DNA from: Dimorphilus gyrociliatus
Lineage: Eukaryota; Animalia; Annelida
Reading direction: 5' to 3'
DNA: 64,000 nucleotides
NCBI GenBank assembly: GCA_904063045.1
Contig: CAJFCJ010000006.1
Coordinates: 1,121,771 to 1,185,770 of the forward strand
The position numbers and the translations under genes are program-made. Each line of letters starts with the position of its first letter. Position 1 is the stretch's first letter. The notes beneath the pieces are model-generated. The model saw nothing but the letters and a program-made list of their open reading frames with translations. It was not told where the DNA came from and searched no databases. This document shows, in pieces, positions 20,404-23,400 of the stretch.

Positions 20404-23400
20404 CTAATCGGATTCAGCGCTCGCCGACCGCCACCAATCTTTAACCTCATTGACTGCGTGTCTTGCTCCAAAGGGAGAGTTAGTAGGTCTATTAGCGTCA
20501 TCTTGTTCGTAACTTTCAGAAACATCAGGAAGATTTCTAGTGCTGCTTACTACTCCTGGTCGAGTTTGACGTTTCTTTAGTCCGACCTTTTCCTTCTCAG
20601 ATTTCAAGGCGCTGTCACTTAGGGTAGGCGAAAGATATTTCCTGTTATTACTTGGAGCCTGAAGCATGCCAGGCAAGGGAGCAGATGTATTTCGTTCGAT
20701 TTGCTTTTTACGAGACCTAACATTTGTCGTCTCTTCTCTATCAACCACCGTATTGAGGGGAGTTGGTGGACTATTATGTTCAGAGACAGTAAATAGAGGT
20801 TCATTGGTGGCACGTAAATTAGTTATAATATTGGAATTTTCTTTCTGTTTAACACAAAAAAAATGTTTACAGCAACGTAAAGTACGAGAGAGAGAGAGAG
20901 AGAGATGAAAGAAACTTACCGCTCTCATTCTCTTTAAGCATTTATCTAACCAATTTCTGATTGTACGTTTAGCAACTTCTTCCTCTATTGTATATTCTAA
21001 TTCTTCCCTCGCTAAAAGCTCCTCTAACTGCAGACTTTTTCTGATATCAACCGAACGATATGCTAACATTCTATGAGAAAAGAAAGTACCCTTTTTGTAA
21101 AGTCATGAACTTAACAGAGTCAAAAGTAATAGCTTACGTCAGAACATCATGAAAGGTCACGTCTTCTCCGTTATGTAAACGTTCAATTTCATAACACATA
21201 TGCTTAAATAATAAACGATCTTTTTCCAAATCTACCTCCAACCGCCCTTTTAAAAGTCTTAGAACAAATTTAACCCTTCTAACAGGTATCAAGCCCTTTC
21301 GATTGATATCGACAACATTCCAAGTATTTTGAAATTGTCTTATATCATTATAACTCAACAAAGCATCTTCTTCATTTGAATAGAATAGACTAAAATTTTC
21401 CATAATTATAGCTGAAATATATTAATTAATTATTATTTGTTTAATTTATTAATAAAATGATAAATAGTACACTAACCGACAAGTAAATTCAATACAATAT
21501 AAGCTATGATGACGTAGAAAGAACAGAAAAATACAAGCGCAGCCGAAAAGTTACCACAGTCGGTTTGCCAATAATTTTCATGTGTTTCACAAAAAGGAGG
21601 TCCAATCTATTGAGACAATTCATTACAAACATGAATTTTATTATTATTATTATGAATATTCATTATTTCTAATTATTTTTTTATTAATAAAGAATAAGTG
21701 AAACTTACCATACAATCGTGCATTATTTTATTCCAATCTGGAAAGTAATTCATAAGTTAGCAAATTATATTTAGAATATTCATAAAGCGTTTATTGATAC
21801 CTTCTCCAGTAACAATTCTAAATAGCGTTACTATAGCGTTTGACGCCGTTTTGAAATTAGCATGTCTGTATAGGCAGATTGAAAATTTAAATATGTTCGT
21901 CAACAAGAAGAAATAAAAACAAGTATGTTTGGTCTTGTCTAAACGTAAACATTTAGTAAAAATACTAGATATATAGTATATATAAACTATTCGCCGTTAT
22001 GAAAAACGCTTACAAGTGTAGTTCTCGATCAATAAGGCTATTAAATATCAACAAAAACAAGGATGTTTTAATTTTGTACTATTTATTTATGATAGGGCGA
22101 TGTTTTCCCTCAGAAACTACGCTGTACAATAAGTGCTAAGTACTGAAGTAAACTTCCTTTAGCTTTTTTCTCTGAATATGTTGATAAATTGGATAGTTCC
22201 GTTCTCAATAATCGGAATTCTTTTCACTTTTCTACTGTATATAACTATTATATAAAGCTATAAAACAATAATATATGTTTGTATATAGAGAATGAAGGAG
22301 GAGGGAACTAATTAGGTTAGGTAATTGGAGTAATTTTGGATTTCCTCCCTTATTTTTTTTGGTAATTGCGTACTAGCTGTGGAAAAATTAGCAAATATTC
22401 GTCAAAGAGAAATTGATGGAGCAACAGCAAAATATTTCTAATCATATCAAAGAACTCGCGGAAGCAACTCAATGGACCAGAGAGCAATTATTAAATTTGT
22501 AAATATTTATACATACAATTATCTCTATCTATAATACTATATATATAAATTTACACAGTTCTCGTCAATTAACACATGGTTTGACAAGGAAATCTTTCGT
22601 ACGCCTATTTTTGACTTTATACCCGAGAGCTCCATTCGAATTGGCGTTTGATTATGCAAATATAATATATAAGGTTTTCTCAACTAATGGAGAAAAGCTA
22701 TATTTTTGTGATTTTGCCGAAATGTACGTTTTAAAACCAAAGAGATTACTACAAAAGATTAAAAGTTTCTATGTAAAAAATGAAAATATGATTGAAATTT
22801 ATCTAAATATTATTATACAAGTTAATGATTTAGTGAAAATAAAAGCTTAAATTACCTTCCTAAATTCTCGCCGTACTTTACCCTTCCAAAGAGGATAACG
22901 CCGGCAAAAGCATATACCAGCATGCAAAGGAACATTCCCATTATGATAAAGAAACTCTTAAACATCGACATAACTACCGTTAGTATAAGCATCTTTAGTG
23001 TTGCCTGTTTATTATATTCATAGTTATCATTATCATCTATTATAAGAAAGAATTAATATATTAAATAAGTTTTAAGTACTTACGTGCTTTCCAGTTATTG
23101 TAAAAAAGCGGACAATTACAACAGTAAATCCGAAAGTATAACTGTAGTCTTGCTGTTTAAATTAATAATAATTCAATTAAAAATTTAATTCTAATCTCTT
23201 TAACTGTTTTAATGATTTACGTCAATTTTTAGAGCTTTTAGTGTAAAATGTAGAATAATCCATATAACTCCTGATATCGTAGCGAACATATCTAATCGAT
23301 TTCTTCGACTCTGCCAATAGCCTTTAGGAGTCAAAGCTATCATCTTCATCACAACCTCCACTAAAAAGAGAATAGTAAAAACCATAGACACTGTTGCCAG

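Follow-up and report, generated by a model that had tools for sequence, protein, structure and literature searches.

The NALCN gene of Dimorphilus gyrociliatus harbors, antisense within one of its introns, what is in our estimate (roughly 85% probable on comparative evidence) a genuine, lineage-restricted and fast-evolving protein-coding gene. Within the window, by which we mean the whole 64,000-nucleotide stretch of DNA that was analyzed, the host intron and the coding parts of the nested gene are placed as follows.

21866..22855, minus strand: NALCN host intron, 990 bp, delimited by GT/AG and by the translations of the flanking exons
22416..22498, plus strand: nested gene exon 1, coding part; ATG, 27 codons and the TT of a split Phe codon
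22499..22558, plus strand: nested gene intron, 60 nt, GT..AG, phase 2
22559..22850, plus strand: nested gene exon 2, coding part; the last Phe base (T), 96 codons and TAA at 22848-22850

The host intron, read on the minus strand, has its donor GT at plus-strand positions 22855/22854 and its acceptor AG at 21867/21866, and it separates an exon ending in ...GENLGR from another that encodes the NALCN domain-IV pore loop. Its 990 bp compare with a median intron length of 66 bp in D. gyrociliatus (PMC7854359), the species to which this genome belongs, as the L003 ORF matches one of its NCBI proteins with 100% identity. The first-pass annotation had proposed that this intron contains a two-exon plus-strand unit with a 60-bp phase-2 intron of its own, and both proposals are borne out: the ATG at 22416, the splice sites (GT at 22499, AG at 22557-22558) and the stop codon were all located, giving a coding length of 27+1+96 = 124 residues. 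From ATG 22416 to stop 22850 the gene lies wholly inside the one NALCN intron, on the opposite strand, and the same arrangement is found in a close relative.

The copy in the relative emerged from a HMMER search of a whole library of 1.84 billion representative proteins with exon 2 as the query, which returned a single match (P0001, E = 5.7e-19; Logan SRR23372229). The 24-kb contig of P0001 has a matching order of a MORN gene, the NALCN exons and the ORF within the same NALCN intron, the orthologous intron being 780 bp long in this species (L013:4180-4959). Although the flanking non-coding DNA is gap-ridden between the two species, the relative preserves the start codon, the donor and acceptor sites, the phase of the intron and the 27+1+96 codons, with zero indels in 124 codons. 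The intron of the nested gene is 96 nt long in the relative and interrupts the identical codon in the identical phase, and the donor context TTGTAAATATTTAT is identical between the species. Protein identity is 67% over exon 1 and 56% over exon 2, which is of equal length in both and best conserved in the segments EKL.FCDFAEM and IYLNII. A further contig (L014, SRR31984831) is 100% identical to and collinear with L013 and retains all introns, so that it carries no evidence on splicing. A word search of protein collections with exon 2 returned nothing and missed P0001 too, and is therefore uninformative on annotation status; neither this search nor HMMER revealed a product from D. gyrociliatus itself in protein collections, in which clustering at 50% could hide it.

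Comparison of the two species shows purifying selection on the amino-acid sequence. We obtained a dN of 0.29 and a dS of 1.22, giving a dN/dS of 0.24 from one pairwise comparison of two species in which dS is saturated, and a Fisher test of pN versus pS yielded p = 1e-8. In neutral simulations the frame stayed open in only 7-8 of 10,000 runs (0.07-0.08%), and the observed amino-acid identity of 56% compares with 40 ± 3% expected neutrally. In neither species does any other frame stay open, on either strand. The dS of the nested gene resembles that of the neighboring genes, indicating that the locus is not unusually mutable, and its dN is about 10 times theirs. By itself the ORF is not beyond chance in length or codon usage: simulated AT-rich sequence contains about 89 open frames of at least 96 codons in each Mb of each strand, and for codon usage the ORF scores no higher than the 93rd percentile. 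GC at the first codon position is low (0.31, like that of the non-coding ORFs of the window), as it also is in two other low-GC ORFs of the window (2851-3516 and 36725-37816), and the differences between species fall by codon position as 37/28/50, a modest periodicity (p ~0.04, hand chi-square). A chance ORF is thus ruled out by cross-species conservation and not by length or codon usage. Judged by the comparison between species, the nested two-exon unit is a functional protein-coding gene.

We considered whether this gene might be a truncated, calcium-insensitive derivative of the NCS/KChIP-type EF-hand proteins (an N-lobe plus an EF3 remnant) that serves some channel as a miniature auxiliary subunit or modulates it in a dominant-negative way, a reading that we regard as unlikely. 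Proteins of the NCS/KChIP family have four EF-hand motifs arranged in two lobes and about 190 residues, and a canonical calcium loop of 12 residues (D-x-[DNS]-x-[DNS]-G...E) in EF2-EF4; their EF1 has a CPxG motif, and NCS proteins proper also have an N-terminal MGxxxS myristoylation signal. The first-pass annotation had aligned the product by eye with the NCS-1/KChIP N-lobe, and that register was reproduced, weakly, in both exons by a KChIP/NCS profile of 28 sequences, which aligns each exon independently and collinearly. A stretch of 15 residues in exon 1 aligns to LDxLxxNTKFSRKEL of the profile, and exon 2 from LTRKSF... aligns to the EF1/EF2 helices with one residue deleted from the loop, so that the EF2-like loop noted earlier, which opens with Ser and lacks one residue, is recovered by the HMM alignment as well. 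Among the 1412 ORFs of the window, those of the two exons come 3rd and 5th against this profile, and of 4000 composition-preserving shuffles per exon, 5 attained the score (p ~1e-3, D. gyrociliatus). Weak hints in the same direction came from phmmer against the PDB (best EF-hand CIB2, E = 0.48), from an Atlas look-alike for D. gyrociliatus (a 'Ca-insensitive EF hand' cluster at 0.92) and from a low confidence single-sequence model of exon 2 (pLDDT 59.6), for which Foldseek returned several NCS structures at E of 1-3.

The resemblance nevertheless found no significant match at the level of profile or structure. No Pfam EF-hand matched exon 2 of either species at E up to 10, and the two-species profile retrieved no EF-hand from the PDB. 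With hhalign, the comparison with the 28 KChIP/NCS sequences gave E = 0.043 and 0.016 (as a single comparison) at a probability of 1-3%, with p = 0.048 and 0.018 from column shuffles, and hmmsearch among the ORFs of the window gave E = 0.68 and 2.5. Part of the signal is unspecific and was not replicated in the relative, where the KChIP/NCS HMM signal falls to p = 0.057 and 0.017, a reversed nonsense model fits exon 2 equally well (p = 0.014) and the Atlas returned nothing. The AlphaFold2 model of exon 2 built from the two sequences (pLDDT 70.7), like the single-sequence model too uncertain to decide against an EF-hand pair, is all helical, and its top hits in Foldseek and VIA-align are generic helical bundles without an EF-hand (best Z 6.6).

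The sequence itself also departs from the family. The product begins MEQQQ (MEQEE in the relative) rather than with the MG myristoylation start, the stretch equivalent to EF1 has LTHG (KNGM in the relative) in place of CPxG, and of the 124 residues only a part aligns, to HMM positions 9-91 of 196. The only loop-like segment has 11 residues and no Asp at position 1 (S-T-N-G-E-K here; in the relative S-N-F-D-E-K-L-F-F-C-D, whose third residue is Phe), and the calcium insensitivity proposed earlier therefore stands in the sense that this loop, if EF-hand-like at all, cannot bind calcium. The KChIP gene of D. gyrociliatus (DgyrCDS6825; G000:C8, loci L004/L015) has a phase 0 intron after ...YRGFKQ and a phase 1 intron before DSSTYAHYVF, neither of which is shared: the phase-2 intron of the nested gene lies about two codons from the first of them, and there is none at the second. 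The single-exon NCS-like protein encoded in this genome gave nothing in a pairwise BLASTP comparison. Kinship to the NCS/KChIP calcium sensors is accordingly not established from these sequence comparisons, and we hold EF-hand/NCS ancestry of the nested gene to be possible, with the odds clearly against it. We would give very little credence to the fuller proposal that a calcium-blind, one-and-a-half-lobe NCS/KChIP descendant was captured in the NALCN intron and might serve NALCN or Kv4 as an auxiliary or dominant-negative partner specific to the lineage, the shared locus and the antisense overlap at the host 5' splice site tying its expression to that of the host. Were the weak EF-hand signal real, the gene would illustrate to what extent a calcium sensor can be pared down; the case also cautions that a family resemblance seen by eye, and reproduced by a profile in the same register, can fail on significance, on replication in the orthologue and on a reversed-model control.

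The intron also contains conserved sequence that is not part of the ORF.

22309..22372, plus strand: conserved non-coding block, ending 45 nt and starting 105 nt (45-105 nt) before the ATG; putative promoter/5' region or intronic enhancer

This block contains three TAAT cores (CTAATTAG, GGTAATTGG and GAGTAATTTTG) and a CCTCCC/T-rich run, and it is 78% identical to the relative over 64 gap-free columns, whereas the DNA upstream of it (21866-22308) is without an alignable counterpart there. On a rival reading, what is conserved would be a non-coding element that regulates NALCN, for example an intronic enhancer, or a non-coding antisense RNA, the open frame being incidental. Long introns of this genome often bear ATAC-seq peaks (PMC7854359), the best-conserved piece is the TAAT-rich block, which is non-coding, and in AT-rich DNA it is not unusual for chance to produce an ORF this long. 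This explanation is very improbable, however, given that start, stop, frame, splice sites and the exact number of codons persist without an indel although about 30% of nucleotides have diverged, that synonymous change stands about fivefold above non-synonymous change and that the frame almost never stays open in the neutral simulations. More improbable still is a decaying pseudogene or the remnant of a transposed copy, as the first-pass annotation had suggested in offering a decaying duplicate as an option; AT-rich codon composition and fast evolution, with dN about 10 times that of the neighbors, would suit such a relic, but the DNA is single-copy with no parent gene detectable in the genome, and a dN/dS of about 0.24 with a frame intact in two species, and kept open in fewer than 1 in 1000 neutral simulations, argues for a functional gene rather than a decaying copy, and the conserved intron for one that is not a processed copy. 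We also rejected the remnant of a repeat or transposon (the DNA occurs only once in the genome), a non-coding RNA in the intron (Rfam gave nothing at E up to 1) and an alternative minus-strand exon of NALCN (neither species has an open minus frame).

For the nested protein-coding gene, the block at 22309..22372 is the putative promoter, and no ATG lies between it and the start codon in either species. An upstream exon, for which an acceptor at 22391 and a hydrophobic candidate at ~22178 had been put forward, could not be upheld. The AG of that acceptor belongs to an in-frame TAG (22389-22391) that precedes the ATG at 22416, and in the relative an in-frame TAA stands five codons ahead of the ATG, so that a continuous N-terminal extension is ruled out by stops just upstream in both species. 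The hydrophobic stretch itself (22178-22255) lies in the non-conserved DNA of 21866-22308 and was rejected.

At its 3' end the nested gene runs up against the host.

22838..22843, plus strand: AATAAA polyadenylation-like hexamer, in the final codons of the nested gene
22856..22992, minus strand: NALCN exon bordering the 3' end of the nested gene; its 5' splice site would be covered in antisense

The hexamer had been reported at ~22838, near the NALCN exon, and was found there, inside the last codons. The aligned hexamer of the relative is AGTAAA, and the next candidates for a poly(A) signal (ATTAAA at 23060 in the window, AATAAA at L013:5166) both lie in the next NALCN intron. Cleavage directed by the AATAAA at 22838 would land at or just within the NALCN exon. 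The stop codon is 5 nt from that exon in the window (4 nt in the relative), so the 3' end of the nested gene must overlap the host splice site. The dS of this exon is unusually low (0.11 versus 0.48 across NALCN), which may possibly be tied to the antisense overlap.

Taken together, these observations suggest a model in which a promoter of the gene's own at the TAAT-rich block drives transcription, and the transcript undergoes a single splicing event and receives its poly(A) tail at or slightly within the neighboring NALCN exon, in which case its 3' end would cover the host 5' splice site in antisense. RNA-seq and CAGE data have been published for D. gyrociliatus (PMC7854359). Because constraint falls on codons, the gene would act through its protein and not by way of antisense RNA. 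Searches treated the two exons separately, and the structure models cover exon 2 only; the 124-residue product is predicted to form a bundle of 4-5 helices, appears to have neither a signal peptide nor a membrane segment, carries a slightly positive net charge and would most likely be a small cytoplasmic protein-binding module. Exon 2 of either species matched no Pfam family at E up to 10, and the D. gyrociliatus genome contains no paralogue. The gene may either have arisen within the dinophilid lineage or be a relic that has diverged beyond recognition. In both cases a small gene supported by selection is added to the compact genome of a model annelid.

Compared with known systems, the nested gene shares with the NCS/KChIP proteins a weak collinear resemblance over the N-terminal helix, EF1 and EF2 and a size of about one and a half lobes, but it is without EF3/EF4, a calcium-binding loop, the CPxG motif and the myristoylation start, and its intron position differs. 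Antisense protein-coding genes nested within introns of larger host genes are common in animals, and like them the present gene has its own start, intron and stop and lies entirely within one host intron; unlike the typical case, its product has no recognizable family, it is seen in two species only and it evolves about 10 times faster than its host. It resembles orphan genes for small helical proteins in being short, AT-rich and helical, in evolving fast despite purifying selection, and in having one close-species match only among 1.84 billion representative proteins (with exon 2 as the query, in a library from which other dinophilids are perhaps absent). In contrast to very young orphan genes, it possesses an intron and a conserved upstream block, which argues that it is not very young. 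It thus offers a clean case of a fast-evolving orphan gene squeezed so closely into the intron of a channel gene that its 3' end would have to overlap a host splice site.

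Re-reading of the sequence bore out every coordinate that the first-pass annotation had assigned to a two-exon, plus-strand unit nested antisense in a NALCN intron, and comparison with a close relative carrying the orthologous locus raises this unit to a real, conserved gene. The genome around the window (G000:C6:1121771-1185770) comprises 78 Mb in 349 contigs with a GC content of 31-38%, and the host intron lies far above the median of 66 bp for introns of Dimorphilus gyrociliatus (PMC7854359). In the NALCN translation, the exons flanking it join as ...GENLGR followed by the domain-IV pore loop.

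Features of the nested gene and its host
~20400-31300, minus strand: NALCN gene
21866-22855, minus strand: NALCN host intron, 990 bp, GT/AG borders
22309-22372: conserved non-coding block, 64 nt, gap-free, 78% identical to the relative
From ATG 22416, plus strand: nested gene exon 1, coding part, 27 codons + TT, then GT 22499
GT 22499 to AG 22557-22558, plus strand: nested gene intron, 60 nt, phase 2
To TAA at 22848-22850, plus strand: nested gene exon 2, coding part, T + 96 codons
22838, plus strand: AATAAA hexamer within the last codons of the nested gene

The DNA is single-copy, with no paralogue in the genome. The nested stop codon lies 5 nt from the NALCN exon in the window and 4 nt in the relative. 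The AATAAA is aligned to AGTAAA in the relative, and further hexamers occur in the next NALCN intron; whichever of these serves, the predicted transcript has to run antisense across the 5' splice site of NALCN.

Taken by itself, the open frame is not beyond chance. An order-3 Markov simulation of the window sequence, with 27 long training ORFs masked, yielded ~89 open frames of at least 96 codons per Mb per strand, and exon 2, by its codon-usage score, stands no higher than the 93rd percentile of these chance frames; four exons of NALCN and a pair of low-GC ORFs in the window score similarly. A whole-library HMMER search with exon 2 returned exactly one relative, a 67-residue protein (P0001; E = 5.7e-19, 63% identity) whose gene lies at locus L013, a Logan contig of 24 kb from SRR23372229; a genomic piece from SRR31984831 (L014) is identical to it. 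This contig is syntenic with the window: a MORN-repeat gene is followed by NALCN exons of opposite orientation, and the ORF occupies the same NALCN intron. The relative retains the ATG, the upstream in-frame stop, the acceptor, and the donor context TTGTAAATATTTAT; its nested intron (96 nt versus 60 nt) is also in phase 2 with the same split Phe codon, and both species have 27+1+96 codons with zero indels.

Substitution counts, added up exon by exon in a single pairwise comparison of the two species, gave dN 0.29, dS 1.22 and dN/dS 0.24 for the nested gene, against 0.025, 0.48 and 0.05 for NALCN and 0.037, 1.41 and 0.03 for the MORN gene. Fisher's test on synonymous versus non-synonymous differences in the nested gene gave p = 1e-8. 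Under random substitution at the observed density the frame stays open in 0.07-0.08% of simulations, and those that stay open reach an amino acid identity of 40 ± 3% (maximum 49%) versus 56% observed; the remaining five frames are all closed in both species. Because dS at the locus is comparable with that of its neighbours, the locus is not hyper-mutable; the nested-gene protein evolves at about ten times the rate of theirs. The substitution pattern argues, with high confidence, for a functional gene that encodes a protein and is subject to purifying selection, a conserved unit lying antisense in the host intron and having start, intron and stop of its own. An antisense role of the RNA only is unlikely as the main function, because selection acts on codons. 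The decaying duplicate considered in the first-pass annotation is rejected by the comparison with a related species that it had proposed (dN/dS 0.24, frame intact in both species, no indel or frameshift), and a chance ORF by the cross-species conservation of frame, codons and splice sites.

Within NALCN itself, dS is very uneven among exons (0.11 to 1.0). Across 45 codons of the exon at 22856-22992 (minus strand), abutting the nested stop, only 3 synonymous changes separate the two species (dS 0.11 versus 0.48 for NALCN overall), and the first coding exon (30886-31296) likewise has a low dS, 0.17. Possible explanations are overlapping 3'-end signals on the antisense strand, RNA editing or splicing structure, and mere noise.

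A hydrophobic N-terminal exon at ~22178 and an acceptor at 22391 had also been put forward, and neither survives. Nothing in the relative aligns to the region 21866-22308, hydrophobic ORF included, and the upstream part of the relative's intron is only ~190 nt; the AG of the acceptor belongs to an in-frame TAG and is not conserved. In-frame stops close the frame before the ATG in both species (TAG 22389-22391 in D. gyrociliatus, TAA in L013), which excludes a continuous extension at the N-terminus. The conserved block at 22309-22372 bears three TAAT cores, CTAATTAG, GGTAATTGG and GAGTAATTTTG, and in both species the stretch from the block to the start codon is free of ATGs. These cores are of the homeodomain type, CTAATTAG being a palindrome, and the block is more conserved than the adjoining coding sequence. 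We infer that the nested gene has its putative promoter or 5' region here; the block could instead be an enhancer, perhaps neuronal, of NALCN. Driven by a promoter of its own in this TAAT-rich stretch, the nested gene would give a transcript that is spliced once and ends at or within the adjacent NALCN exon, and its product would be a small cytoplasmic helical protein working by partner binding.

The product has 124 residues (17 K+R, 12 D+E and one Cys, counts added per exon), with no signal peptide or membrane-length hydrophobic run. In the searches, models and counts the two exons were treated as separate sequences. The profile and structure searches envisaged in the first-pass annotation did not bear out its NCS/KChIP assignment. 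Pfam, at E up to 10, gave no family for exon 2 of either species. A PDB sequence search found only CIB2 (E = 0.48) with the single sequence and no EF-hand with a two-species profile. AlphaFold2 models of exon 2 alone were all-helical, with a pLDDT of 59.6 when built from one sequence and 70.7 when built from two; Foldseek returned several NCS structures at E of 1-3 for the poorer model and no EF-hand for the better one, which in a VIA-align comparison with 48,161 chains matched nothing but generic helical bundles (best Z 6.6). An Atlas neighbour search gave a weak "Ca-insensitive EF hand" match for the D. gyrociliatus sequence and nothing for that of the relative.

Kinship was examined directly with a KChIP/NCS alignment of 28 sequences, made up of matches to the D. 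gyrociliatus KChIP exon together with the NCS-like protein of this species. By hhalign, a 15-residue stretch of exon 1 aligned to LDxLxxNTKFSRKEL and a 21-residue stretch of exon 2 to PQGDSSxYAHYVFNTFDxDxN, collinear and in the register proposed originally, with E values of 0.016 and 0.043 for a single comparison and a probability of 1-3%. Among 1412 window ORFs ranked by hmmsearch, those of the two exons come 3rd and 5th. The one-residue-short EF2-like loop was seen again in this alignment, with Phe at position 3 in the relative; the family membership read from it is unproven. Scores were compared with 4000 composition-preserving shuffles, with a reversed, nonsense model as control.

Fraction of shuffles reaching the real score (KChIP/NCS model; reversed model)
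D. gyrociliatus exon 1: 0.00125; 0.14
D. gyrociliatus exon 2: 0.00125; 0.056
Relative exon 1: 0.057; 0.45
Relative exon 2: 0.017; 0.014

The p-values are much weaker for the relative, which was not chosen by eye, and for its exon 2 the reversed model fits as well as the true one; column shuffles of the two-species profile gave p = 0.048 and 0.018. The resemblance can be reproduced, yet it is weak and in part unspecific, with a winner's curse in evidence. On balance an EF-hand ancestry of the nested gene seems unlikely, and a role as an NCS/KChIP mini-subunit is unproven.

The searches also located other members of the family. The true KChIP orthologue of D. gyrociliatus lies on G000:C8 at about 211-214 kb (L004:776-1168 and L015:1702-1779 and 2720-2857, all minus strand). 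Its exon in L004 matches the NCBI model DgyrCDS6825, which is only 104 residues long and covers 71% of the query, a 123-residue ORF cut from one exon; tblastn found two clear coding exons upstream, and the model therefore looks truncated. An intronless NCS/recoverin-like gene with a myristoylation-type start, MGNGES... (L003:659-1219, plus strand; G000:C9:816458-817018), matches an NCBI protein of D. gyrociliatus at 100% identity, and an intron immediately preceding the EF2 helix is common to two more NCS-like genes (L005 and L006). P0004, a Logan-only protein and probably the L003 orthologue in the close relative, is only 70% identical to the L003-type gene, so this NCS branch is also fast-evolving. 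In the window, the ORF 58037-58333 (plus strand) ranks 2nd of 1412 against the KChIP/NCS model (E = 0.47) through a short 18-residue stretch, probably by chance.

Compared with its supposed family, the nested gene differs in both architecture and motifs. In the KChIP gene of D. gyrociliatus one intron follows YRGFKQ in phase 0 and another precedes DSSTYAHYVF in phase 1; the nested gene shares neither, and its product lacks an MG start and a CPxG motif. We do not assign it to the NCS/KChIP family; as a nested orphan gene, it is an ordinary kind of feature.
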